Shown here piece after piece: positions 8,086 through 62,384 of a stretch of DNA of 64,000 nt (positions are counted from its first letter, which is position 1; the number at the start of each line of letters is the position of its first letter). Below the pieces are notes generated by a model. It was not told the DNA's origin and did no database searches. It saw only the letters and a list, made by a program, of their open reading frames with translations. The DNA is from Penicillus capitatus (taxonomy: Eukaryota > Plantae > Chlorophyta), in assembly GCA_965649825.1 (NCBI GenBank), contig OZ287700.1, forward strand, positions 372,001 through 436,000, in the 5' to 3' direction. Position numbers and translations under genes: made by a program.

Positions 8086-8845
8086 GAGACCTCCAGGAGG
8101 GCGACAATTCCAAGGGAACTGTTATCAGTGTGGAGAACATGGACACTCGGCTAAGTTCTGTCCGTATCGAGTCACACAAGTTCGAGAGGCTCAGCCAGTA
8201 CATACGGAAAACCGTTTTGAAGCACTGGCGTCTTTTGACGAAGACGAAAGGGAGGTAGAGTCTGCTTCAGTGCTTTCTGTGGGATTGAAAGGAAAGGAAC
8301 CCACACAGAGAGAAAGTAGTGTGGCGACACCATCAAGGAGTCAATGTCAGAAAAACGAGGGATGCAAAAGCCAGAACCACGCAAAAGTGACGGAACGGGA
8401 CAGGAATGTTAAGTTCATTAATTACCCCAGAGTAGAAGAGGCATCACAAGACAAACCAGTCAAGTCACGTACATCTCTCAAAGTGACGACCTACCTTGCG
8501 AATCGCCCAGAAAAGGAACAAGCTTTGGTGGATACGGGCGCAGAAGTTTCTCTCTTGCCTTTAGACTACTGTCAGCGCTGGGGTCTGAAGGTCAGGCGTC
8601 TCGAGAACACACGTCTCCGCGGCTTCAATAACACCGTCAGTCAAGTGACGGGCGAGGTAGTTCTACCCACCCGCATTGGAGGTTGGAATCAGGCCATCGC
8701 ATACTACGTGACGAATGCCACTAATAAAGTGATCATTGGTTATTCTGCATTGAAACAGTTTGGGCTCATGGTGGACTGCGCCAATGATTGTTTGTTGGGC
8801 GAGGATGGACATGTCGTCTTTTGCCGCTCTGTTTCGTCAAACTAG
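8018..8845 (+). CDS. Gag zinc knuckle plus aspartic protease of element 1
   Basis: CYQCGEHGHSAKFC (CCHC) and ALVDTGAEVSLL. Confidence 0.9.
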   Translation: MVRPDNSGGASGQQRGPRRAGPRRPPGGRQFQGNCYQCGEHGHSAKFCPYRVTQVREAQPVHTENRFEALASFDEDEREVESASVLSVGLKGKEPTQRESSVATPSRSQCQKNEGCKSQNHAKVTERDRNVKFINYPRVEEASQDKPVKSRTSLKVTTYLANRPEKEQALVDTGAEVSLLPLDYCQRWGLKVRRLENTRLRGFNNTVSQVTGEVVLPTRIGGWNQAIAYYVTNATNKVIIGYSALKQFGLMVDCANDCLLGEDGHVVFCRSVSSN

Positions 8846-11619
8846 CTGCGCCAGGTCAAGGCGCTCCGCCTGGCGTGATGCTACGGGTTGACAGACAGCT
8901 GGTCAAGGGGTCTGAACCTAGTATCTCACAATCATCGTTTATTCTAAAATTGGGAAGGACAGTTTTTCTTACTCCCCTTGAGAGTAGACTTGTAGTTTTA
9001 CCGGTCAGTGTTCACGGGGAAGGGTTGTCTGGTTTGTTTTCTTGCTGTTTTATTCGAGATATCTCGGCCTCTCCGATACTGGGAAAGGGAGGTCGCATAA
9101 CAATCCGGATACATAATTTCTCTGACCGACTAATCACTTTATCGCCGAAGTTAAAGATCGTGCGTGGGGTTTTCTCCGGCACAGGACGATTAAATCACGA
9201 TCTTTCTTTAGTTTCACAACTTCAGTCTGATATTCCAAAGGCATCTGAGCGCCCAGATGTTCTTAAGGAACCTTTCTCCTCAACTTTTTCGACTTGGCTT
9301 TCCCTTTTTCCTTCTTTGTTTGCCAATAATATTGCTGATTACGGTGGTTCACATATCCTACAAACATTGGAGGTCAGGGCCGATGAACTACAATGGCGAG
9401 CACCGATTCCTTTTTCTGATTCGGGATCTCCTCCCTGCATGACCGATTGCTCAATAGAAGCAGCTCGCTCGGAGATCCAATCGCTCCTCACACGAGGAAT
9501 CATTCGAGAGCTGGCTTACTCTGATCGCGGGTTTTTCTCTCCGGTAATTTTCCTGAAAAACCCAGATGGCCGTGTTCGCCTTGTCATAGATTTTCAAAAA
9601 CTGAATCGCTATTCGGAAGTTTGGAACACACATACCCTCGATACCCGCAATGCTGTTCGCAACATTGATCCTTCCTGGCGTTTCTTTACTGTCTTGGACC
9701 TCCGCGATGGTTATTTTCACATCCCAGTGGATTCTTCCCTTAGCGCTTTGTTCTGTTTTTCCTGTTTTGGTCGCCGATTTCAGTTTGTTACTCTCCCTCA
9801 GGGTTGGGCATCGAGTGCCGGGTTTTTCAATGACCGTGTACGCCGCATTTTAGGGGCCACTTCTGCATGCACATACTTTGACGACATTATAGTCGGGGGA
9901 CGAGATCGTAAAACGCACGATCGCAACCTCCACACTGTCCTATCCGTTTTACAAGATGCCGGGATGCACATCAATCCCCAGAAGATTCAGTTTCGTCGTC
10001 CATCGGTGAAGTATTTGGGTTTTTCTGTTTCAGGCGATTCTTATCACCAACGGGCATATATCTCTTCTCAGCTCGCTCAATTACCTGCTGTTACATCAAA
10101 AAAAGGCCTGCAGCGTATTCTGGGGATTTTCACCGCTTGTCGCGGCACTTGTCCTGGACTTGGTCTCGCTATTGCCCCCCTCTATGCTTTCCTCGGTGCC
10201 TCAGTACGCGAGGTGGATTGGTCTTCCGTTCAAGACCTTATTCGATCGGTCGCCGCGGTTCTTCTTCGAAACTCCCTAAGTTTTTTACGCTGTGTCGACT
10301 CACCGGTTTTTCACCTGGAAGTGGACTGGTCCGGTGCCGGTGCAGGCTACCTCTTGTATGCCGGTCATCGTTCTGAACGCCGTCTTCTCGCTACAAATTG
10401 TCGAACGTTGCGTGGGTTTCCAGTCAGTTCCTTTCTTGGAGAGCTTGACGCCATCGTTTGGTGTCTTCAAGATACTATGGCTCTCACAGCCGGTTGTCCG
10501 GTACATGTACACACGGATTCGCTTTCTGCTTTACAAAAACTATCCGCTTGTGACGTATGGTATAAGTCCCGTTCTGATCTCCGCATCGGGCGCCGTCTCG
10601 GCTGGCTCTGGGCTAATTTCCCCCCGAAATCTCGCCTTTTTCTGCATTTCCTGCCTTCCTCCGATAATTATCTCGCTGATTGTCTGTCACGCTGGCCCAC
10701 ATTAGCGCAACGGAAGGAAGTAGACCTGAATGTTGTCAAGAGTGGAAGCGAAAGTATGGAACACTTAAGAAGGATTTCGAAAGCACATGAGGGGCATTGG
10801 GGTGTGCGCAAGACACTCCTAAATTTGAAAAGAGATGGAGGCCCTCTTTGGATAGGAATGGAAAAAGATGTGAGCAGATTCGTCGAAGACTGCTGGGAGT
10901 GTCAGTTGTGGGGCTCGGTACAACACAGGGTGGACTTCGGAATAACGAAGGCAGATAAATTTGGAGACGCAGTAGGGATAGACTTTGCCGGGCCTTTGCC
11001 AACGGAAGATTCTGAACAACCACGTTTTATTCTACTCATGGTAGATTACCTTTCCCGATGGGTTGAGGCATGGGCATGCCTGAGACCAAACAGCGAAGCG
11101 GCAGTCAAAGCTTTAAAAAAGTGGAAACAAAAGAACGGCGAAATTCGCATGCTGGTGTCGGATAATGCACAGACCTGGCACTCCAGGGATGTAAGCCGAT
11201 GGTGCGCGGAAAATGGAGTGACTCAGAGACTCACAGCGAGCTACATGCCGAAGTCAAATGGCATGTGCGAGAGACAGATCGGGATACTGAAGGGGAGATT
11301 GAAAAGGATGGCTGCTAAGCCGTGTGACTGGAGAAGACTTCTCCCAAAGGCTGTGCGAATCATGAACCATTCTGTCAATGAGACAACGTTACACAGCGCT
11401 ACAGAGCTGAAAGACGGTATTGCGCGAGATGGAAAGAGAGTAGTCAAAGGAGTCCAGGAGAAGTGGATCGCTGAGGCACTGGAGAGAACAAGAAGACAAC
11501 AGTGGCATTCAAACGAGGTCAGAAGGAGGAAATATGGCAGCAGAAGACAGCTTCGGATTGGAGATCACGTTCTAAAGCCAAGAGCCAACGCAGATGCGGG
11601 AACCTTTCTTCCACCGTGA
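8788..11619 (+). CDS. pol: Pol of element 1: dUTPase-like spacer, RT, RNase H, integrase
   Basis: RT LDLRDGYFHI, LPQG, YFDD; RNase H EVDWS/ELDA/HTDS/NYLADCLSR; integrase AHEGHWG...CWEC, GIDFAG, LVSDNA, NGMCER. The frame continues after the TGA at 11617 to 11805. Confidence 0.95.
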   Translation: MFVGRGWTCRLLPLCFVKLAAPGQGAPPGVMLRVDRQLVKGSEPSISQSSFILKLGRTVFLTPLESRLVVLPVSVHGEGLSGLFSCCFIRDISASPILGKGGRITIRIHNFSDRLITLSPKLKIVRGVFSGTGRLNHDLSLVSQLQSDIPKASERPDVLKEPFSSTFSTWLSLFPSLFANNIADYGGSHILQTLEVRADELQWRAPIPFSDSGSPPCMTDCSIEAARSEIQSLLTRGIIRELAYSDRGFFSPVIFLKNPDGRVRLVIDFQKLNRYSEVWNTHTLDTRNAVRNIDPSWRFFTVLDLRDGYFHIPVDSSLSALFCFSCFGRRFQFVTLPQGWASSAGFFNDRVRRILGATSACTYFDDIIVGGRDRKTHDRNLHTVLSVLQDAGMHINPQKIQFRRPSVKYLGFSVSGDSYHQRAYISSQLAQLPAVTSKKGLQRILGIFTACRGTCPGLGLAIAPLYAFLGASVREVDWSSVQDLIRSVAAVLLRNSLSFLRCVDSPVFHLEVDWSGAGAGYLLYAGHRSERRLLATNCRTLRGFPVSSFLGELDAIVWCLQDTMALTAGCPVHVHTDSLSALQKLSACDVWYKSRSDLRIGRRLGWLWANFPPKSRLFLHFLPSSDNYLADCLSRWPTLAQRKEVDLNVVKSGSESMEHLRRISKAHEGHWGVRKTLLNLKRDGGPLWIGMEKDVSRFVEDCWECQLWGSVQHRVDFGITKADKFGDAVGIDFAGPLPTEDSEQPRFILLMVDYLSRWVEAWACLRPNSEAAVKALKKWKQKNGEIRMLVSDNAQTWHSRDVSRWCAENGVTQRLTASYMPKSNGMCERQIGILKGRLKRMAAKPCDWRRLLPKAVRIMNHSVNETTLHSATELKDGIARDGKRVVKGVQEKWIAEALERTRRQQWHSNEVRRRKYGSRRQLRIGDHVLKPRANADAGTFLPP

Positions 11620-11929: not shown

Positions 11930-14900
11930 CTAATTGTCACCGAGACGTTCAAGCATTTCGTCCGCTCCTCTCAAGTAAGGCAAAGCTTCATTGCCCCTTC
12001 CAATTCCGACCAAACAGTTCGCATAGTTTCTAATGCAACGTTCGATGTCCGGATGGTCCGCGTCGCCGTAAAGGCGCTCACACATCTCCAGAGCCCGCTT
12101 GAAGAGCGGCAATGCTTCGTTGATTCTTCCCGCAACTTTTAGCACATGAGCATAGTTATTGACGCAACGGAAGACGTCCGGGTGGTCCGCGTCGCCGTAA
12201 AGGCGCTCACACATCTCCAGAGCCCGCTTGAAGAGCGGCAATGCTTCGTTGATTCTTCCCGCATCTTTTAGCACTTCAGCATAGTTCCCGATGGACAAAA
12301 CGAGGGACGGATGGTCCGCGCCGCCGTAAAGGCGTTCACACATATCCAGAGATTGCTTGAAGAGCGGCAATGCTTCGTTGTTTCTATCCGCAACTTTTAG
12401 CACATGAGCATAGTTATTGACGCAACGGAAGACGTCCGGGTGGTCCGCGTCGCCGTAAAGGCGCTCACACATCTCCAGAGATTGCTTGAAGAGCGGCAAT
12501 GCTTCGTTGATTCTTCCCGCATCTTTTAGCACGTCAGCATAGTTCCCGATGGACAAAACGAGGGACGGATGGTCCGCGCCGCCGTAAAGGCGTTCACACA
12601 TCTCTAGAGATTGCTTGAAGAGCGGCAATGCTTCGTTGATTCTACCCGCAACTTTTAGCACATGAGCATAGTTATTGACGCAACGGAAGACGTCCGGGTG
12701 GTCCGCGTCGCCGTAAAGGCGCTCACACATCTCCAGAGCCCGCTTGAAGAGCGGCAATGCTTCGTTGATTCTTCCCGCATCTTTTAGCACTTCAGCATAG
12801 TTCCCGATGGACAAAACGAGGGACGGATGGTCCGCGTCGCCGTAAAGGCGTTCACACATCTCCAGAGATTGCTTGAAGAGCGGCAATGCTTCGTTGATTC
12901 TTCCCGCAACTTTTAGCACATGAGCATAGTTATTGACGCAACGGAAGACGTCCGGGTGGTCCGCGTCGCCGTAAAGGCGCTCACACATCTCCAGAGCCCG
13001 CTTGAAGAGCGGCAATGCTTCGTTGTTTCTACCCGCATCTTTTAGCACTTCAGCAATGTTCCCGATAGACAAAACGAGGTCCGGATGGTCCGCGTCGCCG
13101 TAAAGGCGTTCACACATCTCCAGAGCCCGCTTGAAGAGCGGCAATGCTTCGTTGTTTCTACCTGCAACTTTATGCCCAAGGGCATAGTTATTGACGCAAC
13201 GTAAAACGTCCGGGTGGTCCGCGTCGCCGTAAAGGCGTTCACACATCTCCAGAGATTGCTTGAAGAGCGGCAATGCTTCGTTGATTCTTCCCGCATCTTT
13301 TAGCACGTCAGCATAGTTCCCGATGGACAAAACGAGGGACGGATGGTCCGCGCCGCCGTAAAGGCGTTCACACATATCCAGAGATTGCTTGAAGAGCGGC
13401 AATGCTTCGTTATTTCTACCCGCAACTTTATGCCCAAGGGCATAGTTATTGACGCAACGGAAGACGTCCGGGTGGTCCGCGTCGCCGTAAAGGCGCTCAC
13501 ACATCTCCAGAGCCCGCTTGTAGAACGGCAATGCTTCGTTGATTCTTCCCGCATCTTTTAGCACTTCAGCATAGTTCCCGATGGACAAAACGAGGGACGG
13601 ATGGTCCGCGCCGCCGTAAAGGCGTTCACACATCTCCAGAGCCCGCTTGTAGAGCGGCAATGCTTCGTTGATTCTTCCCGCAACTTTTAGCACATGAGCA
13701 TAGTTATTGACGCAACGGAAGACGTCCGGGTGGTCCGCGTCGCCGTAAAGGCGCTCACACATCTCCAGAGCCCGCTTGTAGCGCGGCAATGCTTCGTCGA
13801 TTCTTCCCGCATCTTTTAGCACTTCAGCATAGTTCCCGATGGACAAAACGAGGGACGGATGGTCCGCGCCGCCGTAAAGGCGTTCACACATCTCCAGAGA
13901 TTGCTTGAAGAGCGGCAATGCTTCGTTGATTCTTCCCGCAACTTTTAGCACATGAGCATAGTTATTGACGCAACGGAAGACGTCCGGGTGGTCCGCGTCG
14001 CCGTAAAGGCGCTCACACATCTCCAGAGCCCGCTTGTAGAGCGGCAATGCTTCGTCGATTCTTCCCGCATCTTTTAGCACTTCAGCATAGTTCCCGATAG
14101 ACAAAACGAGGGACGGGTGGTCCGCACCGCCGTAAAGGCGCTCACACATCTCCAGAGCCCGCTTGAAGAGCGGCAATGCTTCGTTGTTTCTACCCGCAAC
14201 GTTATGCCCAGCGGCATAGTTATTGACGCAACGTAAAACGTCCGGGTGGTCCGCACCGCCGTAAAGGCGTTCACACATCTCCAGAGCCCGCTTGAAGAGC
14301 GGCAATGCTTCGTTGTTTCCACCCGCATCTTTTAGCACTTCAGCAATGTTCCCGATAGACAAAACGAGGTCCGGATGGTCCGCGTCGCCGTAAAGGCGTT
14401 CACACATCTCCAGAGCCCGCTTGAAGAGCGGCAATGCTTCGTTATTTCTACCCGCAACTTTATGCCCAAGGGCATAGTTATTGACGCAACGTAAAACGTC
14501 CGGGTGGTCCGCGTCGCCGTAAAGGCGCTCACACATCTCCAGAGCCCGCTTGAAGAGCGGCAATGCTTCGTTGTTTCTACCCGCATCTTTTAGCACTTCA
14601 GCAATGTTCCCGATAGACAAAACGAGGTCCGGATGGTCCGCGTCGCCGTAAAGGCGTTCACACATCTCCAGAGCCCGCTTGAAGAGCGGCAATGCTTCGT
14701 TGTTTCTACCTGCAACTTTATGCCCAAGGGCATAGTTATTGACGCAACGTAAAACGTCCGGGTAGTCCGCGTCGCCGTAAAGGCGTTCACACATCTCCAG
14801 AGCCCGCTTGAAGAGCGGCAATGCTTCGTTATTTCTACCCGCAACTTTATGCCCAGCGGCATAGTTATTGACGCAACGTAAAACGTCCGGGTGGTCCGCA

Positions 14901-17900
14901 CCGCCGTAAAGGCGCTCACACATCTCCAGAGCCCGCTTGTAGAACGGCAATGCTTCGTTGATTCTTCCCGCATCTTTTAGCACTTCAGCATAGTTCCCGA
15001 TGGACAAAACGAGGGACGGATGGTCCGCGCCGCCGTAAAGGCGTTCACACATCTCCAGAGCCCGCTTGTAGAGCGGCAATGCTTCGTTGATTCTTCCCGC
15101 AACCTTATGTCCAAGGGCATAGTTATTGACGCAACGTAAAACGTCCGGGTGGTCCGCGTCGCCGTAAAGGCGTTCACACATCTCCAGAGCCCGCTTGAAG
15201 AGCGGCAATGCTTCGTTGTTTCTACCCGCATCTGTTAGCAATCCAGCATAGTTCCCGATGGACATAGCGAGGTCCGGATGGTCCGCACCGCCGAAAAGGC
15301 GCTCACACATTTTGAGGGCTCTGTGAGCATACGATATAGATTCTCGGAACATGCACATCTCTTTGTAGGCCTCTGACATATGTTCGAGTAACTTGAGTTC
15401 TGTGCGATGTTCCTTGCAGTTTTCGCAGCTTTCTTGGAGCGGCAACCCGTTTCGTGCGAGCGATGTCCACAGTTCTCGGTTTGAACGGTCGGTTCTCCAC
15501 TCGCCGATGTATCGGCTGATTGAATCCACTATGATGTCGACGTGATCTCTAATTGTATTCCTTTTTTGTTCTTCGGATTGTTGAGTCTGGCTGGAACTGC
15601 TTTCATCGATGTTGATGAGGAGCTGTTTGACTAGGAGTTGCGTCTCTGCGTGCATGTGGATCTGGTTCGTTTTTTTGTCCCACGAGACATGAGAGAAACG
15701 CTCAAGGAGCTTTATGGAGTTTTCCGTCTTTGTCCGCGATGGCTCATCCTCGAGTTCGTGCCACTTGTACACCCAATCGACGGGCACTCCGTTTGGATCG
15801 AGAAGAGCCAGCTTGGCGAGGAGATCGAGCGAGCGCGGGCCCAAGTCGTTGGGTTCTTTCGAGATCTTTCGCACGCTCGAGTTGAATACGAAGACCATTC
15901 CAGTTGCGACTTCGCCGCTTCGCGTCGCGGAGAGCTTTGCTATCGTTTCGGCTTCCTGCGGTGTGAGTTTGTACCGCAGCATACGTTGCACCCATTCGCC
16001 GGGTTTCCAAACATCTTCGTCCCTCATCACGGAGAAGAACTGCGCGAGGGCCAGCGGAGTGCGAGGCAGCAGATCCATCAAATCGTCCAGATCCTTCGAC
16101 CGCAGTGACTTGGCACACTCAAATTTCTTCGCTAGAATCAGCGCTTCGACTTCGTCGAGCGGCTCGAGTCGAATCGCGCTGCTCTCCCACTCACTCGCTC
16201 CGCACTCTCTCGTCGTGACGATGACGTGTGCCCCTGCCGACGGAACGTACTCGCGAATCAGCTCGAGGTTCGGTGCGTCGTCGAAGACGTACAGACAGCG
16301 CGATCTTCCGAGCTTCTGTTGAACGCGTTTGACCAGCTCTGGCGTGTCGTCGTCCGTGGGAATTTGCAAATATTCCGCGATCTGCAAGAACGCGGCAGTA
16401 ATGCTCTCCCTCGAACCTGAAGGAATCCAGAACTCGTCGTCGTAGCTGTGTTTGCTCCTGAAATGATCGAACGCCTTTATCGCGAGCTGAGTCTTTCCGA
16501 TGCCGCCCGGGCCTGCGACGACCTTCGCGACAACGGACTCGGCGCTTGCTGTGAATGCTTCGACGATTTCGCTCAGTTCGTCCTTTCTCCCGGCGAAGTA
16601 GCGGACAATGTCAGGCGAAGCCAAAGAGTGTTTCTTCTTCGTCTGCAGGCGATCTTCGGTCGTCGGTGCAGACAGTTCGTCTTCGAGGCCCTTCCACACT
16701 CGAAGAAACAGTTCGTTGCCGGATGTCTTGTCTTCGCCGGACGAGACCAAATCGATCTCTTCCTCCTCTTTCTTCTCCCTCCCCCAGTCGGACTGCGCTT
16801 CTTCGCATGCCGGGTTATGCACATTCGATATCAGTTTATCCATGGCGTCGTGCGATGCACGCTTTTCGTGCTCGTGACCTCGAGCGCATAACTCCGCAAG
16901 GTTGCCGAGAAGCTCCGAGCAGAGATCGGGGTCGCTGGACCAGTCCCACTCGTCAGTGCGCTCGACGAGGCTTGCTAGAGTCTCGGCGCTCGCTCTGCGG
17001 ACATCTCCGTCCTTCGCGTGGATGGAGAGCATGGTCAACATTTCCACCACGCCGAACCTCAGAGCCTTGCAGTGTTCGGAGTCGGACGCCCTTCCTTCGA
17101 CCACGAGAGAGGACAGCATCTCGCTGAACACTTCGAAAGCGGACGGATCTTCCATGGCCGCGAAGTGCGCGGTGTTGAGCGCATGGAGGCACGAGAGCCA
17201 GTGATCCTCCCAAACGACTTCGCCGCGCCTCGCTTGATGCATCGCTTGCACCATCGCTTGTAGCCGGACCTGTTGCAGCGCCCTCGCCACGGACTCCGCA
17301 TTCCCGAGATCGAAATCTAGATGCACCGCTTTTCGCACCGCTTGATGGATGCCCGCCGTGCCGTAGAGGAGCCCGACAACGCGTTTTGCGTTACTCGCAT
17401 TGTGGGCGCCACGCTTGGAGAACTTAGAAGATGTCAAGCTGTGCCGAACCAGCATCGCTTCGTACTTCATCGGGTAGTACCTCGCGACGTCGATCACCTT
17501 CCGACAACAGTCCTCGAACTTGGCGTGCAATCCTTCAGGATCGTCCGGATCCAAATCGTCCAATCCGACGTCGCCAAGGATCCTTAAGCACTCGTGCACA
17601 GCGTGCAGGGCGCTGCATTGTGCGGGAAACGTCTTTCTCGAGAAGCTCGCCTTTTCTGGATCGAGCTCATCTAGTAGGAAGTTGGCGAGCCGAACAAGAC
17701 AGCCCGGATCGTCCTCGAAGAGCTCGGCTTCGACAGTCTGAAGCGTGAGTTCAATCGCCTCCGTGAGATATCTGTTGTTGGGAGCGTCGGCACACAGCTT
17801 GTCGCGGACGCTGCCGAAGAAGTCTTTGAGGAGAGGCACGTGTTCGCGGTCAGCGCTGTCGAGGCCGCACAGAGCAAGACACTCACGGACCACCGCCCCT

Positions 17901-18757
17901 CCATTGTCCGTCGCTTCTCCGACGTGCATGTCTTTGAAGGCGCAGAGGACCCTCCTTATGACTACTGCTGGTGCAAGTCTCAGCACGGCGTCGTCCGCCT
18001 CGTTGAACGCTTTCACCACTTGTTCCAGGTTCTGGTACGGCGACCCTTCGTCGAGAATCCTCTGGACGAGGAATCGATCCACTGACGTTAAATCCCTTTG
18101 TATCACCGAACGAGAGGTGCTGCCTTCGGCCGGAGTCTGATGCCCGAGTGCATCGCTGCTGGATGAGGGTTCCCCGTCTCCGCCGCCCCGAAGTCCGAGA
18201 TCTCCCAAGAAGATGAATCTCTCCGCGCCGCGAGTTGGATCAGACACAATGTGAATGCGGCGACGTGCAGCACTCCGCGGCAGACGGGCCAGTCGTCGCG
18301 TTGCCTCCTCCGGGTCTGAGAAGCCCTTGCAGAAAAGCGGAACCGTTGTAGTCTTGGAGAACGGTCCCTTTCGCTCCACAATCCTCCCCGCAAACTTCTC
18401 ACCTACTCGAAAGATCTGGACGAGGCCAGTACCCTCGATCTCAAGCTCGCAGACTTCCTCAGAGTCTCCCTGAGTAGAAAGCTGAAAGCTAGAACATGAA
18501 GAAGAAGAGAGCACTTGTATGCGTGCGCGAGGAGTCTGGGAGCGAGGCAGTTCTGCCCGATAGAAAGACGATCGAGGCACGTGAACCGAGGAGAGGTTCC
18601 TAGCCGTCGTGCCCCGCCGCTGCACGAGCGATTCGCCTCGTGAAGTCAATTCACGGTCGTGTCCTTTGAAGAAGACGTCTGGTGAGGCCTCCCAGCGGCG
18701 GCGATAGTGGGACGAGCGTAAGGGAAACGTCCTGGCGACACTGACAGGATCCCACAT
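11930..18757 (-). CDS. NLR-like STAND NTPase-TPR protein A (2275 aa, intronless)
   Basis: Single ORF with FAGRKDEL, Walker A GPGGIGKT, Walker B CLYVFDDA, VIVTTR, PLALAQ, and 26 TPR-like 43-aa units. True start codon uncertain. Confidence 0.9.
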   Translation of the reverse strand: MWDPVSVARTFPLRSSHYRRRWEASPDVFFKGHDRELTSRGESLVQRRGTTARNLSSVHVPRSSFYRAELPRSQTPRARIQVLSSSSCSSFQLSTQGDSEEVCELEIEGTGLVQIFRVGEKFAGRIVERKGPFSKTTTVPLFCKGFSDPEEATRRLARLPRSAARRRIHIVSDPTRGAERFIFLGDLGLRGGGDGEPSSSSDALGHQTPAEGSTSRSVIQRDLTSVDRFLVQRILDEGSPYQNLEQVVKAFNEADDAVLRLAPAVVIRRVLCAFKDMHVGEATDNGGAVVRECLALCGLDSADREHVPLLKDFFGSVRDKLCADAPNNRYLTEAIELTLQTVEAELFEDDPGCLVRLANFLLDELDPEKASFSRKTFPAQCSALHAVHECLRILGDVGLDDLDPDDPEGLHAKFEDCCRKVIDVARYYPMKYEAMLVRHSLTSSKFSKRGAHNASNAKRVVGLLYGTAGIHQAVRKAVHLDFDLGNAESVARALQQVRLQAMVQAMHQARRGEVVWEDHWLSCLHALNTAHFAAMEDPSAFEVFSEMLSSLVVEGRASDSEHCKALRFGVVEMLTMLSIHAKDGDVRRASAETLASLVERTDEWDWSSDPDLCSELLGNLAELCARGHEHEKRASHDAMDKLISNVHNPACEEAQSDWGREKKEEEEIDLVSSGEDKTSGNELFLRVWKGLEDELSAPTTEDRLQTKKKHSLASPDIVRYFAGRKDELSEIVEAFTASAESVVAKVVAGPGGIGKTQLAIKAFDHFRSKHSYDDEFWIPSGSRESITAAFLQIAEYLQIPTDDDTPELVKRVQQKLGRSRCLYVFDDAPNLELIREYVPSAGAHVIVTTRECGASEWESSAIRLEPLDEVEALILAKKFECAKSLRSKDLDDLMDLLPRTPLALAQFFSVMRDEDVWKPGEWVQRMLRYKLTPQEAETIAKLSATRSGEVATGMVFVFNSSVRKISKEPNDLGPRSLDLLAKLALLDPNGVPVDWVYKWHELEDEPSRTKTENSIKLLERFSHVSWDKKTNQIHMHAETQLLVKQLLINIDESSSSQTQQSEEQKRNTIRDHVDIIVDSISRYIGEWRTDRSNRELWTSLARNGLPLQESCENCKEHRTELKLLEHMSEAYKEMCMFRESISYAHRALKMCERLFGGADHPDLAMSIGNYAGLLTDAGRNNEALPLFKRALEMCERLYGDADHPDVLRCVNNYALGHKVAGRINEALPLYKRALEMCERLYGGADHPSLVLSIGNYAEVLKDAGRINEALPFYKRALEMCERLYGGADHPDVLRCVNNYAAGHKVAGRNNEALPLFKRALEMCERLYGDADYPDVLRCVNNYALGHKVAGRNNEALPLFKRALEMCERLYGDADHPDLVLSIGNIAEVLKDAGRNNEALPLFKRALEMCERLYGDADHPDVLRCVNNYALGHKVAGRNNEALPLFKRALEMCERLYGDADHPDLVLSIGNIAEVLKDAGGNNEALPLFKRALEMCERLYGGADHPDVLRCVNNYAAGHNVAGRNNEALPLFKRALEMCERLYGGADHPSLVLSIGNYAEVLKDAGRIDEALPLYKRALEMCERLYGDADHPDVFRCVNNYAHVLKVAGRINEALPLFKQSLEMCERLYGGADHPSLVLSIGNYAEVLKDAGRIDEALPRYKRALEMCERLYGDADHPDVFRCVNNYAHVLKVAGRINEALPLYKRALEMCERLYGGADHPSLVLSIGNYAEVLKDAGRINEALPFYKRALEMCERLYGDADHPDVFRCVNNYALGHKVAGRNNEALPLFKQSLDMCERLYGGADHPSLVLSIGNYADVLKDAGRINEALPLFKQSLEMCERLYGDADHPDVLRCVNNYALGHKVAGRNNEALPLFKRALEMCERLYGDADHPDLVLSIGNIAEVLKDAGRNNEALPLFKRALEMCERLYGDADHPDVFRCVNNYAHVLKVAGRINEALPLFKQSLEMCERLYGDADHPSLVLSIGNYAEVLKDAGRINEALPLFKRALEMCERLYGDADHPDVFRCVNNYAHVLKVAGRINEALPLFKQSLEMCERLYGGADHPSLVLSIGNYADVLKDAGRINEALPLFKQSLEMCERLYGDADHPDVFRCVNNYAHVLKVADRNNEALPLFKQSLDMCERLYGGADHPSLVLSIGNYAEVLKDAGRINEALPLFKRALEMCERLYGDADHPDVFRCVNNYAHVLKVAGRINEALPLFKRALEMCERLYGDADHPDIERCIRNYANCLVGIGRGNEALPYLRGADEMLERLGDN
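11933..15292 (-). repeat. Coding tandem array: 25 x 129-bp TPR units plus a capping unit
   Basis: Units begin G(D/G)AD(H/Y)P every 129 bp from 15292 to 12067. DV(L/F)RCVNN and (S/D)LVLSIGN types alternate almost strictly. Confidence 0.95.
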
Positions 18758-20462
18758 CTATCGAATGTGACATTGAAACACGAGTCTTCGGCAGAGAGTT
18801 CGTCACCTTTGAAGCTGTGTAGAAGCTGAATTGGCTCGAACCCGGTGTGCATTCCCTGTGTCGAAGGCCCTGATGGACAGCATGCAACTCTGATAGCAGG
18901 TTTCGAACAGTCGGCGATTACCTGGACCGGACGAGGCAGTTTGCGGCGCTCGCCGTCAACCACCTTCGTCCCTTCGGAGATTTCCATCCGGTAAGGCTTC
19001 CAGTCCGCGTCCGCTACCGGCGCCGTCGTACGGATTCCGGTCGACACGCCTCTATCAGTAGTCGGCGAACGTACGCACTGGAGGCGCGAAGTCGTGGACG
19101 AGCATGCGGATGTGTCAGGGACCTTACCGGTTTTACAAATCTGCAGTACTCTCCTTCTTTGCCTGACCATTCGGACGTTTTCCCGGAGGAGAGAGAACCG
19201 TCGCGCATTTTGCCGATGCGCGGCGACGCGCCGTTGCTCTCGGCGACGTTGCGAAGAAGATGAGGTGTACGATTCTTCATGGCAAGAGGTTCGGATTTGA
19301 CTGCGCGAACACGTCCTGGTGTTCTTGGAAATGAAACACGTAAACAGAGAAACTCAGATAGATGGTACGGATACTCTGCTGGCAGGATGATTGCGCAATC
19401 GGCGCAATGCGCCTAATGAAACAAATCGAAAGTGCTCATGCGCAGTTGACTGCTGAGCGATCGTCGAGGACGTCGACGATGAGCCTGTGGGCTATGGAGG
19501 GCATCATGCTACTTGCATCGGTTTAGAGTATCAGTCGCCGCCGAAGCAGATCCTTTTAACGCTGATGGAGGCTTCGCATGTTTGGGAACACTCGAGATGC
19601 AGTCTGGGAATCGTCAGAGTGGAGAAGAATGTAATGCTTTAGCCATCCGCGAATGGGCAGTCTCGAGCGCAAAGCAAAGAAGCCGAGTGTGGACGCTTCG
19701 TCGCAGCGCACGATGTGGTCGCGTGGAGTGGACGACGGACGAAAGCTCACGGATCCGAAGCATCCTGCGCTTCTCACACGTCGAAGAGCTCATTAGTTTT
19801 GCATTTCACCGTCCTATGGCAAACGCGGCAGAGAGGCACAGCAGATACATCGTCCAGCACTGTTTCCTACTGATGTACGCGGTTCAAGCGTCGAATGGGT
19901 GAAGGAGAAGGATCTCCGGATCAACGACTCTCCAAATCCGGGAGTATTGCGGCAGGAAAGCCGACAAAGGGATACTGAAGATACGTCTCGGAACAAACAA
20001 AAAGACAGACGCGATCATACGATTCTGGTTCTTTAGTGTCGTTTGGTAATAACTTTGTATAGCAGTCCGCCCACGACCGATGTGAGCTCTCCCCAACTGA
20101 CATTAGGCATTTCAGAATGTGATTTGTAATTTCAACTGCGTTGCTGCAAAACAATGGACAGGCTCTTTTTAGCCTAAAAGAATTCGATCGTTTAGTTGCA
20201 AGAAGACTCTCGAAATTTATCAATTTCTTTCAGACCGATGACATCTCTCCGAGGGATTAGGACACATCGATACTGATAACTGTGTCGAGTAGTTATGGCG
20301 AGGAAGAAACTAGAGTCTCAGTCAAAGACAAAGTGCTACTACTCCTCTGTCTTCAGACGTTGACAACGAGATCTCACAAAGCAGACCCGTGTTTGAGATA
20401 CTTTCGCAGAACTTTGGACTGTCAAATCATGATCCACGACAAGAGAGAAGCCATTGGATATC

Positions 20463-40749: not shown

Positions 40750-43700
40750 ATGAATCGGCTTGCCCCTGCTGCTGCACTACTTGTCCTGGTTTCCCTCCTC
40801 TCTTTGGCTGTCTGTCAAACAGATGCAGGTGACGGCCGAAACAGCATGAGCCACACATGCATGTATTCTTCTTTCGACCGACGACCAGACTATGCGCTAT
40901 CATTTCGTTTACTTCTGTGCGATCGCGTTACTCGTGTCTTTTGGTTTCGAGTGTTGGTTTCTAAAAGCGCCCTTCGCCGATTTGTGTCGGTTAAAAGTCC
41001 ATTGCGCAGGTGGAGAATGTCGCCTCACTGCGGAAGAGATAGATGCTGTGTACGACAGTGATCGCGCCACGTGGTCAGTCACCGAAGGAATCTACAGTCG
41101 TTATGGTCTCCAGAGTGTCGTCGATTGCGCTGAGGAAGGCGACGTTCTCTTGCTCAAAGTCTCGTCGTCGTCGGCGCCGATTTCTCCTCAGGAACAGATC
41201 GTCGTCCGGCGGAATCTGACAATCGACGGAGCCGAGAAGCCGTCAAGAACTAAGCTCACCTGTCCTGCGGGAAAGGGACTGTTCCGCATAGAGTGAGCAT
41301 TCTCGCATCTCACTCCTCGCTAACAGCAAAGGATTCTCTGAAGGAGTGGCAGCTTCACACTCAGAAACGTTGTCATCGTTGGATGCAAGTTCTCCGAGGG
41401 AGACGAAGTCGTCGGCATCATCGAAACGGCCGGATGCAATCCTCGATCTCGGGCGAACGGGGAACTGCACTTATCTGGCGTTAAGTTTCGCAAGAATGAA
41501 AACCCAGCCGGCTCCGTCGGAGTCGTCGTCCGGGATCCCGGCTGCCATGGCAGAGTCGTCATGCAAGATGTGACCTTCGAGAAAAACCAGTACAGCCATC
41601 CGATGTCTCTGTCCACCGACAACGCACTGGAGAAAGTGACAGTCGAAGGAAATGAGGGCATCAGTAACACAAAAACTTCTTCATTCTTTCACTTCCCTCC
41701 AAATTCAACGTCGCTGTTGTCGAACGTGATCTCCAGGAAAAACGACAAGGGGTCGTTGATCGACGGACATCGCGTAAACTTGACCATTTCTGGTTCAGTT
41801 TTTGCCAACAACGATGGGCGTCAGAGTGGCGTCATTCGCCTTTCTGCTTCCGCTTTGACCGTTTCCGATTCGAATTTCATCAGCAACATCTGCCGTTGCA
41901 ACGGCTCTGCCGTCTCCATGAACCGCAGTGTCTCTGCAACTTTCTCGTCCTGTGGATTTGTCGCGAACAATGCGTCTGGATTCGGAGGCTCCGTCTATGC
42001 TTCTCGAATCCAGAACATAAAATTTACTTCGTGTTCCTTTGTGGGCAGCTCTGGTGCTTACAAGAGCGTCGGAGGAGCTGTCTATCTCGAAGGCGACGGA
42101 TCCATAATCTCAGGAGCCGTCCGAAGACCGCAGAGTGCGACCTTTGACAACTGCACGATCGAACGGAGCTCGGCGGGCGACGGTGCAGCAGTGGCCTTTC
42201 TGTTCTGGCGCGGGGCCATTCGCTTCCGTTCCTGTCGATTTGATGGCAACAAAGAGATCAAAGAGGTGTTTGATTACAGCACCCATGCCTACACTGCCGC
42301 CGGAGCCATTCTCGTGTTCAAAGGAAACATCACGCGCTTTGCCGCCAAAAGATGCCAGTTTCATCACAACACGGCGAAGAAAGGCGGCGCTCTGTCATTT
42401 CTTGCCACGACTGGAACGTTTGACGTTGCCGATTCGGCTTTCGTTCGAAATCGGGGAGATGGGCCTTACTGGGATGAAACGGGCGGTGGCAGCATCCTGG
42501 TGGACACCCAGATACCAGAGTGGTTTGAAGTACCGTACTTGTTTCAAGGGCAGTTGTACGTGGAGGAGGAAGTGAATCTCACGATCTCTCGCTCCACATT
42601 CAAGAGCAACAGAGCGGATACCTTGGGAGGTGCTCTGCACGTCACTGGCAAATTTGTGCACGTCAGCCTTCAAAATAACACCTTCTTCAAGAATCGTGCT
42701 GAACGTGGGGCTGCCGTCAGTGTGATACGCGTCAGTTCCTTCAGTACATCTGGGAATTGCACGTTCCAGAACAACAGCGCCAAGCTTAGCGGCGGTGCGA
42801 TCTACGTCCAGTCCACAGAGGGAACCATCGAATGGAGCACATTCGTTCACAACAAGGCTCAGTACGGCGGCGGCGTGTCCATCGACCACACAACAACGAT
42901 AGAAAGTTCGTTATTTGCAAACAACGAAGCGACGAGGAGTGGCGGTGCTCTGCACATCAATCGCCATCCGAGCGCGGAACTTGGTCACGAATACTACAAA
43001 GTTGGTATCTTTCAATGTCAGTTCATCGCTAATCAAGGAGGCGATTCGGGAGGTGCTATTCAATCCTACTCTGAAGAGAATTTGCGTATTTCCCAGTGCA
43101 CCTTCGAAAAGAACAGTGCTTACGCAGGAGGAGGTCTCTCTCTGTTTCGTGGACAGTTACGGACAAGAACATGGAGCATCGGCACGTCAACTTTTTCGGA
43201 GAATCACGCATCCATTGGAGGTAGGATGTGGTGGGCCATTCAAATGTTCGTTGACGCGTGCTTCTAGGTGCTATATCTGTGTTGGAAAACTCGGACCTTG
43301 ACAAGCGAGACCGTGATCTGGGCATCCCTCTTCACTATTATTCGTTTTCTTCCTATCCTCCCGGTCTGGAAATTTCGAGGACGACCATCTCTAACAACAC
43401 TGCAGAGGAGTCTGGTGCTGGTATTTTTGTTGAGGACCCTGGCGTTTTGGGTATCCGTTTCGAGAAAACCGGCGTAACTACGGAGATCCGAGCGAGCGAT
43501 TTCAAGAAAAAGGTAGACTGTGGGAACACATCGAAGCCTGAATTCGATGAAATCAAGAACCTCCACAACAACACTGTCGCAAGAGGCTACGAAGAGAACC
43601 TGGCGAGCATCTCAGATGCGTTCTGCGTCTCCATCGCCGAGGACGAGAAGCCAATTGCAGTGATATCCGCTGGACAGAAGTACCGTCTGACAAACTGGAG

Positions 43701-45751: not shown

Positions 45752-48700
45752 ATGTGGGATCCTGTCAGCGTCGCCAGGACGCTTCCTTCGCTCGTGCCTC
45801 GCCGTCGCCGCCGCGGGGAGGCCGCACCAGGCGTCTTCTTCAGAGGATTCGACCGTGAAGAGACTCGCCGCGGCAAATCGCGCGTGCCTACAGGCAGGAC
45901 AGCCAAGAATCTGCCATCGGTCCACTCAAGTGGTTCGTCCTTCGATCGACAAGAGCAGCCTCACTCCCAGATTCCTCAGGCATGCACACAAGTGCTGTCT
46001 TCTTCTTCCTGTTCTAGCTTTCAACTTTTAACTCAGGGAGACTCTGAGGAAGTCTGCGAGTTTGAGATCGAGGGTACTGGCCTCGTGCAGATCTTTCGAA
46101 AAGGAGAGAACTTCGCCGGGAGGATTGTGGAGCGAGTGGGACCGTTCTCCAAGACTACAACGGTTCCGCTTTTCTGCAAGGGCTTCTCAGACCCAGAGGA
46201 AGCGATTCGCCGTCTGGCCCGGCTGCCGTGGACCGCTGCACGTCGCCGCATTCACATTCTGTCCAATCCAACTCGCGGCACCGAGAGGTTCATCTTCTTG
46301 GGAGATCTTGGACTTTGGGGTGGCGGAAACGGGGAACCCTCATCCAGCAGCGATGCGCTCGGGCACCAGACTCCGGCCGAAGGCAGCGCCTCTCGTTCGG
46401 TGATTCAAAGGGCTTTGACGTCAGTGGAACGATTCCTCGTCCAGAGGATTCTCGACGAAGGGTCGCCGTACCAGAACCTGGAACAAGTGGTGAAAGCGTT
46501 CAACGAGGCGGAGGACGCCGTGCTGAGACTTGCACCAGCAGTAGTCATAAGGAGGGTCCTCGGTGCCTTCGGAGACATGCACGTCGGAGAAGCGACGGAC
46601 AATGGAGGGGCAGTGGTCCGCGAGTGCCTTGCTCTGTGCGGCCTCGACAGCGCTGACCGCGAACACGTGCCTCTCCTCAAAGACTTCTTCGACAGCATCC
46701 GCGACAAGCTGTGCACCGACACTCCCAGCAGCAGATATCTCACGGAGGCGATTGAGCTTACGCTTCAGACTGTCGAAGCCGAGCTCTTCGAGGACGATCC
46801 GGGCTGTCTTGTTCGGCTCGCCAAGTTTCTACTAGACGAGCTCGATCCGGAAAAGGCGAGCTTCTCGAGAAAGACGTTTCCCGCACAATGCAGCGCCCTG
46901 CACGCTGTGCACGAGTGCTTGAGGATCCTTGGCGACGTCGGATCGGACGATTTGGATCCGAACAAGCTTGAAGGATTGCACGCAAGGGTCGAGGAATGTT
47001 GTCGGAAGGTGATCGACGTCGCGGGGTACTACCCGATGAAGTACGAAGCGATGCTGGTTCGACACAGCATGACATCTTCTCAGTTCTCCAAGCGAGGCGC
47101 CCACAATGCGAGTAACGCAAAACGCGTTGTCGGGCTTTTCTACGGCACGGCGGGCATCCATCAAGCGGTGCGAAAAGCGGTCCATCTGGACTTCGATCTC
47201 GGAGATGCGGAGTCCGTGGCGAGTGCGCTGCAACAGGTCCGGCTACAAGCGATGGTGCAAGCGATGCATCAAGCGAGGCGCGGCGAAGTCGTTTGGGAGG
47301 ATCAGTGGCGCACGTGCCTCCGTGCGCTCAACGCCGCACACTTCGCGGTCATGGAAGATCCGTCTGCTTTCGAAGTGTTCAGCGAGATCCTGTCCTCTCT
47401 CGTGCTCGAAGAAAGGGCGTCCGACTCCGAACACTGCAAGGCTCTGAGGTTCGGCGTGGTGGAAATGTTGACCATGCTCTCCATCCACGCGAAGGACGGA
47501 GATGTCCGCAGAGCGAGCGCCGAGACTCTAGCAAGCTTCGTCGAGCGCAAGGACGAGTGGGACTGGTGCAGCGACCGCGATCTCTTCTTGGAGCTTCTCG
47601 ATAACCTGGCGGAGTTATGTGCTCGAGGTTTTGATCACGAGAAGCGTGCAGCTGACGACGCCATGGAAAGACTGATTTCGAATGTGCATAACCCGGCATG
47701 TGAAGAAGCCCTGTCCGAGTGGCGGGGGGAGAAGAAAGCGGACGAAGGGGTAGATTCGGTCTCGTCCGGCGAAGACAAAACAGCCGGCAACGAACTGTTT
47801 CTTCGAGTGTGGAAGGGTCTCGAAGACGAACTGTCTGCACCGACTACGGAAGTTCTCCCGCGGCCGAAGAAGAAACACTCTTTGGCCTCGCCTGACATTG
47901 TCCGCTACTTCGCCGGGAGGAAGGATGAGCTGAAAGCAATCGTCGAAGCCTTTGCAGAGAGCTCCGAGTCCGTTGTCGCGAAGGCCATCATATGCCCGGG
48001 CGGCATCGGAAAGACCCAGCTCGCGATAAAGGCGTTCGATTACTTCAGGAGCAAACACAGCTACGACGACGAGTTCTGGATTCCTTCAGGTTCGAGGGAG
48101 AGCATCACTGCCGCGTTCTTGCAGATCGTGGAATATCTGCAAATTCCCACGGACGACGACACACCAGAGCTGGTCAGACGCGTTCGAGAAAAGCTCGGAA
48201 GATCGCGCTGTCTGTACGTCTTCGACGACGCACCGAACCTCGAGCTGATTCGCGAGTACGTTCCGCCGGCAGGCGCACACGTCATCGTCACGACGAGAGA
48301 GTGCGGAGCGAGCGAGTGGGCAAGAAACGCGGTTCGACTCGAGCCGCTCGACGAGATCGAAGCGCGGATTCTAGCCGAGAAATTTGAATGTGCCAAGTCA
48401 CTGCGGTCGAAGGATCTGGACGATTTGATGGATCTGCTGCCTCGGACTCCGCTGGCCCTCGCGCAGTTCTTCTCCGTGATGAGGGACGAAGATGTGTGGA
48501 ACCCCGGTGAATGGGTGCAACACATGCTGCGGTACAAACTCACACCGCGGGAAGCCGAAACGATAGCAAAGCTCTCCGCGACGCGAAGCGGCGAAGTCGC
48601 AACTGGAATGATCTTCGTATTCAACTCGAGCGTGCGAAAGATCTCGAAAGAACCCAACGACTTGGGCCCACGCTCGCTCGACCTCCTCGCCAAGCTGGCG

Positions 48701-55618: not shown

Positions 55619-55760
55619 TGTGATCCCATCGCGATGAATTGTATTAAAAAACGAGGTTTGCAGCGTTTTTAAAAAGGGCGTTATTCACAGAATCTAGGAT
55701 CTTTTGTATGAACAGGTCATTTCATCGTATCAATCAAATCACTGGATCCTCGGCTTGACA
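55619..55760 (-). repeat. 3' LTR of element 2
   Basis: tgtgatccc...cttgaca, 141/142 identical to 60281-60422. Confidence 0.96.
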
Positions 55761-57944: not shown

Positions 57945-58480
57945 CCCATTGGCAATCTTGCAAACGAATAGGGTTGTTTGTCAAATACAGTCACGAAATA
58001 AGGCTGTAAATCAACAGCCAACGGGATTTGATAAAACCCGTGTCGAAAATCAAATTTTGCAAAGTACTTCATACCGGACAGATTCTGCACCGCGCCTTCT
58101 CGATTCATTGGCAAAGCAGGGCTTCTCGCAGTCAGCTTGTTCATGCCTCTAAAATCAAGGACCACTCGACGCTCGAGCGAATCCTTCTTCTCGACCGAAA
58201 ACCATGGGATAAGATGCTTCGGTTTCCCATTGAATCTCTTGACAATCCCGGCATTTATGAGCTGATCGATCTCTCTCCGGCAAGCCGCAGTCTCGGCAGC
58301 AAAAACGTAAGGGATCTTCGTGTAGACGGAGTGAAGCTTCCCTCTGACGTCCTTCAAACTGACCTCCCATCCCGAAAAACGTCCAACTCCACCACGGATG
58401 ACGTCCGGGAATCGTGCCAGTAGCTGTTCTAGGCTGCAGCAGTCAATTGGATCATTCTGCGACAGTAGTCCTGACTGCAA
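57902..58480 (-). CDS. Pol of element 2, RT N-half
   Basis: FSVEKKD...RRVVLDFRGMN, KFDFRHGFYQI, RLPMGWINS. Frameshift to the next ORF at a T6 run. Confidence 0.9.
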   Translation of the reverse strand: MQSGLLSQNDPIDCCSLEQLLARFPDVIRGGVGRFSGWEVSLKDVRGKLHSVYTKIPYVFAAETAACRREIDQLINAGIVKRFNGKPKHLIPWFSVEKKDSLERRVVLDFRGMNKLTARSPALPMNREGAVQNLSGMKYFAKFDFRHGFYQIPLAVDLQPYFVTVFDKQPYSFARLPMGWINSMAFLILQFR

Positions 58481-58482
58481 GT

Positions 58483-61235: not shown

Positions 61236-62384
61236 CTAGGCAGAGCCCTTCTTCACTGAGAGTTTTCTCTTCTTCTTGGTCGCCGTCTTCGACTCTTCCT
61301 TCTTCGGCTTGCTGGCCACTTTGCGTTTCGAGGCCGTGGCGAAGAAGCTGTCGAGACGCGACTGTGTGCTCTTCCCGCGAGAGGCATTTACGCGCTGGGC
61401 CGCACGTTCGACGCGCTCCTGACTGAAACCCTTCTCCCTCACCAAGAAGTCCACGAGCCCCTCCGCATCGATCTTCGACCACTTGATCTCCGGCAGGTCG
61501 TCCTTGGAGAGGACATCCGGATGTCTGAACAGTTCCCGCGCTCTCTCGTAGTGGAAGTCCTCGACCACCCACTTGTCTCCCTTACTCTCCCGCAGAGCCT
61601 CGATTGCTTTCTCGATCGACCCGTGTTGTCGCATGAGCTTCAGGGCCGTCACGCTTCCGATGCCTCTGATCGTTGAGCAGTAATCGCACCCGGACAGGAT
61701 GCACATGTCCAAGAAGGCGTCTGCGTCTAGCTGCAGCTCCTCGAGCATCGCCGCGTGGTCAAACTCGGTCACCTCCTTGGACTTGGCGGGGGCAGCCATA
61801 AGACGTCGGACAAGTCGCGGCGTCCCGAACGTTAAGGCATCCATGTCCTCCGTCGCCACCGCGTAGACGAGTCCGTCTCGGCACATCTGGGCACACTGAG
61901 CCTCGGCCTCAGAGGGCGCCTCGATCACCGGTACCCCCATCAGTCTCAGCAATCTCTGGCACTCCTCTATCTGACGCTGCGTCATGCGGACTGTCCGCTT
62001 GCTGAATTTCTCGACAGCCTCGGTGTCGCCCTCCTCGACCGCCGCCTTGAGTGCGCGTTCGGCATCTGCCCGTCTCTCCAGTCGCTTCTCTAGCTCCTTT
62101 GCTTTGCTTTCGGGCGGTTTGCCGTCAAACACGTATATTGGTTTGATCCCCGCCTCTAGCATCCGCACCGTCCGGTAGAACATCCCCTGCAGGTGGCTCG
62201 TCTCCTCTCCCGACGCATCCGTCAGCGTCAGCTCCCCAGTCCTTCCAACAGCGACGAGGAACTGATAGATGTGCATACTGGCGTCCACAGCGACACGCCG
62301 ACCGAAGTAGTCTTCGAATCGCGTCTCTCGGATACAGGATGGCGCATTGGCTTCGAGCAGCTTGGCTAGATTGTGAATACCCAT
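61236..62384 (-). CDS. FEN1: Flap endonuclease 1 (intronless, 382 aa from ATG 62384)
   Basis: [56 protein letters not shown] box QSRLDSFF, basic tail. Confidence 0.97.

Follow-up and report, generated by a model that had tools for sequence, protein, structure and literature searches.

We analysed a gene on the minus strand of a 64,000-nucleotide stretch of DNA from the green alga Penicillus capitatus (contig OZ287700.1, positions 372,001 to 436,000; hereafter the window). The open reading frame (ORF) at 11930..18757 encodes 2275 amino acids (aa) arranged in the order leader, N-terminal module, linker, helical domain, NB-ARC domain and TPR array. The gene is a member of an NLR-like family of STAND proteins, the N-terminal module of which is hitherto undescribed and shared across domains of life. 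With high confidence, we regard this module of about 95 aa as a previously undescribed unit, distinct from ubiquitin and common to this alga and to Bacteroidota. This defines a protein domain family without previous annotation, which occurs in two biological contexts. The exported proteins headed by the module in uncultured marine Bacteroidota form a large and polymorphic set, and their cargo makes sense only inside a host cell; in a green alga of siphonous type, the module stands at the N-terminus of an NLR-like family that has expanded and whose TPR arrays evolve fast. Taken as a whole, the explanation that we favour, with moderate confidence, combines such a module at the head of the protein, gene transfer between bacterium and alga, and a handle that would carry a cuttable joint.

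The module and its boundary motif

The module occupies 18179..18469 (minus strand; aa 97-193, GDSEEVCELEIEG...FIFLGDLGLRGGG) and was delimited by profile search, alignments A1 and A2, structure prediction with AlphaFold2 (AF2) and codon-position bias. The conserved unit begins at GDSEEVCELEIEG (aa 97), about 16 residues before VQIF (aa 113, 18421), and closes with L189-R190-G191-G192-G193 (18193..18179, minus strand; R190 codon CGG), the local form of an L-x-G-G-G boundary motif. The original prediction had placed at 18182-18460 a discrete N-terminal segment ending in LRGG and followed by a Ser-rich linker and a helical domain. This peptide is indeed encoded there, on the minus strand (aa 100-192, 18460 belonging to aa 100 and 18182 being the last base of G192), and the same succession was seen in the translation and in the family alignment. 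In the translation, LRGGG is followed by the Ser-rich stretch DGEPSSSSDALGHQ and then by the helical region; the Ser/Gly/Pro-rich acidic linker (18098..18178, minus strand; DGEPSSSSDALGHQTPAEGS...) has G/S/E-rich equivalents in the bacterial members.

One type of homologue search was insensitive, giving four matches with a 745-aa query and eight short ones with a profile of alignment A2. The bacterial relatives were revealed by an exhaustive profile search of 1.84e9 representative sequences with the algal alignment A1, which retrieved 47 proteins at E<=1e-3. The best matches were algal paralogues (P0129-P0138 and P0141, E 8.5e-55 to 4e-10); most of the remaining ones (about 30 examined) are distant, with 22-30% identity, yet they align across the whole module. 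The family pattern reads ..G..V.F....GQW.A.V.ERIG.FSR..LPVVC...DVA..L..L...P.....RIHVL......VYVG.LGLxGGG, and the window segment matches the family profile over the entire module, including ..RIG.FS..LPV.C..RIHV..VYVG.LGLxGGG. Residues G35, L60, G89, G95 and G96 are invariant in alignment A2. No match to the module was found in Pfam (empty for 22 members), NCBIfam, PADLOC or PDB, and aa 1-720 of the window ORF gave no Pfam match.

Composition predicts 0.09 occurrences of LRGG in the protein (0.02 in the first 720 aa), and one is observed. As the looser L.GG recurs ten times within TPR repeats, in the form of LYGG or LFGG, the tetrapeptide by itself is weak evidence; it is its conservation across homologues that lifts the motif above chance. 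In 44 members (14 algal and 30 bacterial), P4 is Leu in 43, P2 and P1 are Gly in all 44 and P1' is Gly in 39, and the Leu and the two Gly are preserved in each of the 14 algal copies. The motif is thus near-invariant although members are only about 25% identical. P3, on the other hand, varies (R 16, K 16, L 8, Q 2, W 2): the Arg of LRGG is replaced in 28 of the 44. Since P3 is variable while L, G and G are essentially invariant, the true motif is L-x-G-G-G, of which LRGG represents one version. The conserved run extends upstream as [FY]-[VL]-G-x-L-G-L-x-G-G-G, in continuity with the last predicted β-strand (β6).

Predicted fold and relation to ubiquitin

AF2 modelling from a 22-sequence alignment gave a predicted local distance difference test score (pLDDT) of 78, with 73-78 for the five models; it supersedes an earlier run on 6 sequences, which returned the same topology with one confident model in five. 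The predicted elements are β1 (3-11), β2 (15-22), β3 (25-34), β4 (37-47), α1 (53-62), α2 (65-69), β5 (72-77) and β6 (82-88). In the tail GDLGLRGGG..., pLDDT is below 50 from the first G of GGG (model residue 95) onwards; the module would therefore end in a flexible C-terminal tail finishing in Gly-Gly, with an invariant L-x-G-G that is disordered in the model.

The module had been proposed to be ubiquitin-like, and several features are reminiscent of ubiquitin and ubiquitin-like (Ubl) domains. The small domain (about 80-95 aa) carries an L-x-G-G, here LRGG, in a flexible tail after its last β-strand; an unrelated polypeptide comes next; L, G and G are invariant; and short LRGG peptides are known substrates of deubiquitinases (DUBs). 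One could thus imagine a divergent ubiquitin-like domain that host DUBs remove at LRGG|, as in ubiquitin-fusion precursors. We consider this improbable. The predicted order, ββββ-αα-ββ plus a disordered tail, differs from the β-grasp (ββ-α-ββ-310-β), Foldseek searches with the module model retrieved nothing significant and no Ubl (best E 0.5 in PDB and 0.26 in BFVD), hhalign gave a probability of 0.5% and PF00240 was not matched, so that homology with ubiquitin was rejected. The module further departs from ubiquitin in its unconserved P3 Arg, its conserved P1' Gly and its position behind a bacterial export signal in most members. The ubiquitin-reminiscent 'MQIF' start of P0003 was likewise discarded as a gene-caller artefact, its codon being GTG, with an in-frame TAG 16 codons upstream, directly before GDSEE. 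A PUR/Whirly-like ββββα resemblance (Foldseek match to Pur-alpha repeat III, probability 0.44, 42 residues) was too weak to be retained.

Bacterial relatives

Among the matches examined, relatives outside the alga were proteins of uncultured Bacteroidota only; not every profile match was checked for its source. Cluster look-ups led to MEN0016374.1, MEM7383220.1 and MEM7382803.1, labelled 'MAG: ... [Bacteroidota bacterium]' by NCBI (MAG, metagenome-assembled genome), and P0154 was located on GCA_039208545.1. A scan of GTDB species genomes with alignment A4 yielded 12 loci, all in a single MAG (JBCCGO01, isolate P01_B01_bin.45), which carries at least 12 copies. Further bacterial members lie on TARA_SAMEA60... 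metagenome scaffolds and in one HiFi assembly; two of these relatives, L020 and L021, are on scaffolds TARA_SAMEA6037673 and TARA_SAMEA6017928. The TARA scaffold names suggest a marine, possibly host-associated source. No rRNA was found in 138 kb of bacterial loci, and no paper citing the MAG accessions was found.

The bacterial homologues anticipated by the original prediction thus exist and, according to NCBI labels, belong to Bacteroidota. Its more specific parallel, with Amoebophilus/Cardinium-type proteins, holds at the level of the phylum only: the searches retrieved no named genome from either genus, and GC content at the MAG loci is 0.48-0.54, i.e. about 50%, well above that of those genera. 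Common to the family and to the effector repertoires of Amoebophilus asiaticus and Cardinium are many paralogous exported proteins rich in TPR/HEAT repeats and lipobox-like N-termini.

A hydrophobic, signal-type N-terminal segment is present in 22 of the 24 complete bacterial members, and eight of the 24 have an L[QE]SC lipobox-like site; such a segment is clearly absent from four of the six algal sequences checked. The bacterial layout is a Sec-type signal peptide or lipobox, a disordered stretch, the module, LxGGG, a G/S/E linker and then varied cargo. The cargo consists of the helical domain alone (P0140), the helical domain with NB-ARC (P0154), NB-ARC and TPR without the helical domain (P0142), the helical domain with NACHT, HEAT and DUF294, a nucleotidyltransferase (P0152), DUF294 with TPR (P0163), a GTPase (P0167), or a lipase-like domain with NB-ARC and TPR (P0173). 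In bacteria, the module is combined with at least six cargo architectures.

The genes next to the bacterial copies are housekeeping genes (DnaK, DnaJ, PolA, TyrRS, CysRS, LysRS, LeuRS, LptF/G, TrmD and SecA) and insertion sequence (IS) transposases. Tandem family members are frequent, e.g. 1832 and 1741 aa at L012 (81..10923) and 2412, 687, 1597 and >394 aa at L018 (10001..27239), which suggests local duplication and cargo shuffling. Tandem Bacteroidota members often stand beside IS transposases. No protease or transporter gene recurs beside the bacterial copies, where tandem members and housekeeping genes were found instead.

Relationship between the algal and bacterial genes

Residues 81-1046 of the window protein are colinear with residues 36-1002 of the bacterial P0154 in a single blastp high-scoring segment pair (24.8% identity, E 5e-62), and the algal architectures with and without the helical insert both have bacterial counterparts (P0154 and P0142, respectively). 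The algal members looked up (P0001, P0003, P0129-P0136, P0138 and P0141) are all on ENA metagenome contigs of 0.02-1.8 Mb, those of the last ten being mostly 0.1-1.8 Mb long, and P0002 and P0004 are on ENA contigs of 0.7-4 Mb; none of the members looked up comes from a named eukaryote. Among them, the search of 1.84e9 representatives brought up algal-type and Bacteroidota matches only. The window gene itself is embedded in eukaryotic DNA, between Ty3/gypsy elements and Gemin5-like and FEN1 genes. Patchy distribution and whole-gene colinearity strongly argue for interdomain transfer, and on these sequence comparisons we consider it very likely that a complete gene (module, helical domain, NB-ARC and TPR) was transferred.

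This bears out part of the proposal of horizontal acquisition in the original prediction: transfer between bacterium and alga is backed by the colinearity of module, helical domain and NB-ARC with P0154. A neighbor-joining tree of the module and helical domain (514 columns), in which only five bacterial sequences carry the long region, separated algae and bacteria as reciprocally monophyletic groups with 100% bootstrap. Identity is 23-28% between alga and bacteria, 30-45% within bacteria (65% for one pair) and 52-59% within algae (88% for the window pair). Because the bacteria are more diverse and combine domains more freely, a bacterial origin is favoured, and passage from bacterium to alga appears the more probable direction. 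In our preferred scenario, the whole gene would have passed from such a bacterium into the alga, where the signal peptide would have been lost, a 5' intron probably gained and the family expanded. One consideration weighs against this part of the scenario: the algal clade is not nested within the sampled bacteria, so the tree does not decide the direction.

The lack of nesting would also suit the opposite course, in which the family originated in a eukaryote, be it the alga or another, and was captured by a lineage of host-associated Bacteroidota that added export signals and shuffled the cargo; intracellular bacteria are known collectors of eukaryote-like repeat and signalling domains (PMC8831229, PMC4209131). 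We hold it to be unlikely, given that the bacteria display at least six cargo architectures and a deeper module diversity (30-45% identity) than the algae (52-88%), that in both groups the top-scoring model for NB-ARC, at a score under threshold, is the bacterial NB-ARC-TPR model NF040586, and that no named eukaryote contributed a member among those looked up. Mis-joining of a bacterial gene to algal DNA might be suspected since the window belongs to a metagenome assembly contig (ERZ25074695), and is extremely unlikely: two diverged copies lie 27 kb apart amid Ty3/gypsy elements and algal genes, a second assembly has related copies on contigs of 0.7-4 Mb, all bacterial copies are only about 25% identical to the algal ones, and about 1.2 kb of upstream sequence bearing splice-site-like signals was duplicated along with the gene. 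The family provides a concrete example of a whole NLR-like gene that very likely passed between domains of life, and it bears on the debated bacterial input to the origins of NLRs in algae and plants (PMC7145615). Bacteria and algae commonly have NB-TPR arrangements, and horizontal gene transfer has been proposed for algal NLR origins (PMC7145615).

Proposed function of the module and of its junction with the cargo

The exported bacterial proteins carry nucleotide-dependent cargo (NB-ARC, NACHT, GTPase, nucleotidyltransferase), which fits delivery into a host cytosol; we infer that such cargo works in a nucleotide-containing compartment, i.e. the host cytosol. The alga keeps both module and motif without the export signal, which argues for a role in the eukaryotic cytosol rather than in bacterial secretion as such. 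The module may therefore be regarded as a shared N-terminal 'handle' acting in the eukaryotic cytosol, the LxGG|G tail and exposed linker forming a joint between handle and cargo. This joint could be a processing site for a Gly-Gly-directed cysteine protease (of DUB, ULP or adenain/PLpro-like specificity), the action of which would free the cargo.

Papain-like and adenain-type cysteine proteases (clans CA and CE) cut LXGG| and (M/I/L)XGG|X. The junction has Leu at P4, a free P3, Gly-Gly at P2-P1 and an exposed linker, a resemblance of pattern only. From this pattern, we advance cleavage at the motif as a tentative proposal, and cleavage by a host DUB specifically as an improbable one. A fuller version, in which a non-ubiquitin pro-domain with a ubiquitin-style L-x-G-G tail lets cytosolic Gly-Gly proteases free effector cargo, and the alga captured the gene whole, expanded it into a receptor family and now uses cleavage for activation or regulation, seems unlikely as a package. 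LxGG-directed release nevertheless provides a simple biochemical hypothesis and, if cleavage proved true, effectors would have a new means of exploiting the ubiquitin-processing enzymes of the host.

Several points count against a cuttable joint. P1' Gly is conserved too, which a GG-directed protease does not need, and in the algal copies P3 has drifted to L or W. For recognition, canonical DUBs rely on the body of ubiquitin, which is missing from the module fold, itself a prediction from a shallow alignment. Finally, a structural cap or hinge explains the data equally well. The module would then be an N-terminal signalling or adaptor domain of an NLR-like STAND protein that remains uncut, the L-x-G-G-G serving as cap and hinge, with the Leu packing on the domain and the glycines merely letting the linker leave. 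The conserved stretch that runs on from β6, the conservation of the third Gly and the absence of a recurrent protease gene beside the bacterial copies are all consistent with such a hinge, as is the fact that NLR N-terminal domains normally remain attached (for the architecture, see PMC4986451). It accounts less readily for a position-specific L..GG, which hinges rarely keep at about 25% identity while P3 varies freely, and for a bacterial layout that resembles a leader plus cargo, generic on the N-terminal side of the motif and variable on its C-terminal side. On balance, the plain hinge is a plausible alternative, and we regard hinge and cuttable joint as about equally likely.

The double-glycine leaders removed by C39 peptidase-ABC exporters offer another parallel, as an N-terminal leader ending in Gly-Gly is cut from varied cargo. 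These leaders are 15-80 aa long and cytoplasmic, with no preceding Sec signal. The family described here differs in its Sec signal ahead of the module and in its cargo of up to about 2300 aa, and no C39 transporter was seen near the genes.

Gene start and candidate 5' intron

The only Met before aa 277 is the ORF start at 18757, which is preceded by a TAG. The leader (aa 1-92; 18482..18757, minus strand) diverges by 23% between the two paralogues of the window without codon-position bias (18/23/23), and this divergence over the first 276 nt resembles that of the upstream non-coding DNA (17-20%) for the same pair. The module diverges by 10% with a bias towards third positions (8/4/18), which argues that it is under purifying selection. 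The leader thus probably lacks coding constraint and may represent read-through of an intron or untranslated region.

A candidate 3' splice acceptor, consisting of a polypyrimidine tract and CAG|GGAGAC, lies directly before the module (18470..18472, minus strand) and is kept in both paralogues and in L002; L001 has an in-frame TAG at the acceptor position. Upstream, alignment of the paralogue and L002 delineates the end of a candidate exon (18922..18972, minus strand) encoding GTKVVDGERRKLPRPVQ in phase 0, with the conserved peptide GT[KE]VVDG[EK]R..PRPV[QE]. It is followed by a GT donor (about 18921), GTAATC in the window gene, GTAAGT in the paralogue and GTGAGT in L002. A second conserved GT donor was observed at about 19130, after an ORF that starts with ATG at 19280. 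There are thus several candidate donors and acceptors, and the exon phases are provisional.

These features point to a true N-terminus that is probably on an upstream exon, with a 5' intron just before the module. In either case, the module and motif are, to judge from their constraint, coding, with a start upstream of both; a start codon downstream of the motif is excluded, as no Met follows in frame before aa 277 and the module is constrained in the manner of coding sequence. The apparent lack of introns, taken in the original prediction as a hint of horizontal acquisition, does not serve as an argument, because FEN1 of the same alga likewise has no intron and because a 5' intron is probable in the gene under study.

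NLR-like architecture of the algal genes

The helical domain (about 500 aa; 16598..18097, minus strand) is of no known family. It is homologous to the region that follows the module in bacterial P0140, P0152, P0154, P0161 and P0170 (blastp, E 1e-50 to 6e-28) and had no match in Pfam, PADLOC, NCBIfam or PDB, the PDB sequence search giving noise. Short algal paralogues (P0001-P0004) are devoid of it, their module and linker being joined straight to NB-ARC-TPR.

The NB-ARC NTPase domain (aa 730-917; 16007..16570, minus strand) was identified with Pfam PF00931 (43.9 bits for a cut-off of 23.5, E 2e-11) and contains the P-loop GPGGIGKT from aa 749. The subsequent tandem array (12047..15310, minus strand; Pfam TPR_10 701 bits) corresponds to about 26 TPR_10/TPR_12 units at aa 1147-2275. 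At the DNA level, Tandem Repeats Finder described it as a near-perfect repeat, with 25.3 copies of a 129-nt period or, at 92% match, 12.6 copies of a 258-nt period. Two unit types alternate in this array, and it suggests concerted evolution and unit reshuffling like those of fungal NLR repeat arrays. With an NB-ARC above the Pfam threshold and C-terminal superstructure-forming repeats, the protein falls within the NB-ARC STAND NTPase (NLR-like) class.

Like the NB-ARC-TPR STAND/NLR-like proteins of bacteria and fungi (PF00931 with PF13374/PF13424; NF040586), it has an NB-ARC with a P-loop, then TPR units of 42-43 aa, and a variable N-terminal domain ahead of the NOD. Its repeats are highly identical to one another (92% at the DNA level), as in fungal NLRs, in which high internal repeat conservation of NB-ARC-TPR members has been linked to rapid diversification (PMC4986451). 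The window gene differs in its module and 500-aa helical insert, which are outside the described NLR effector-domain families, and its NB-ARC region, at 130 bits (E 1e-37), is far under the cut-off of 300 of the NCBIfam model NF040586 (FxSxx_TPR). The algal genes most likely act as NLR-like sensors, the new module sitting where an N-terminal effector domain would.

A second paralogue of 2446 aa with the same architecture is located at 45752..53092 (plus strand), with its module at 46040..46330 and its motif, LGLWGGG, at 46316..46330. The two window paralogues are 88.5% identical in aa across the module and helical region, and the LWGGG of the second one corresponds to a CGG>TGG change at the Arg codon. 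In P0130, on a 337-kb ENA contig, an algal-type module with LLGGG is joined to sequence of a beta-lactamase-like serine hydrolase in place of NB-ARC; either the alga has a different cargo here or the ORF is mis-called.

Genomic context of the window

The window is part of a 1.17-Mb contig (ctg340500_39x_l) of ENA assembly ERZ25074695 and contains Ty3/gypsy reverse transcriptase-integrase ORFs, a Gemin5-like ORF and FEN1; no tRNA and no Rfam match were found within it. The FEN1 gene (382 aa, intronless; 61236..62384, minus strand), which a lycopene cyclase gene adjoins, encodes a protein 67% identical to that of Caulerpa lentillifera (EukProt), about 58% identical to those of Bryopsis and other green algae and plants, and 95% identical to a protein of another ENA metagenome assembly. 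By these comparisons, the contig is eukaryotic and green-algal, and the nearest named relative of the alga in them is Caulerpa, of the Bryopsidales. These algae are giant coenocytes in which intracellular bacteria are known (PMC4487195).

Ty3/gypsy-type ORFs (reverse transcriptase, RNase H, integrase and aspartyl protease) at 8788..11619 (plus strand) and 55734..60291 (minus strand) flank both NLR-like genes, and these elements may have favoured the spread of the family. Repeats of the Chlamydia polymorphic-membrane-protein (Chlam_PMP) type are present in a 568-aa ORF at 41561..43267 (plus strand), which could be another bacterial-type gene in the alga.

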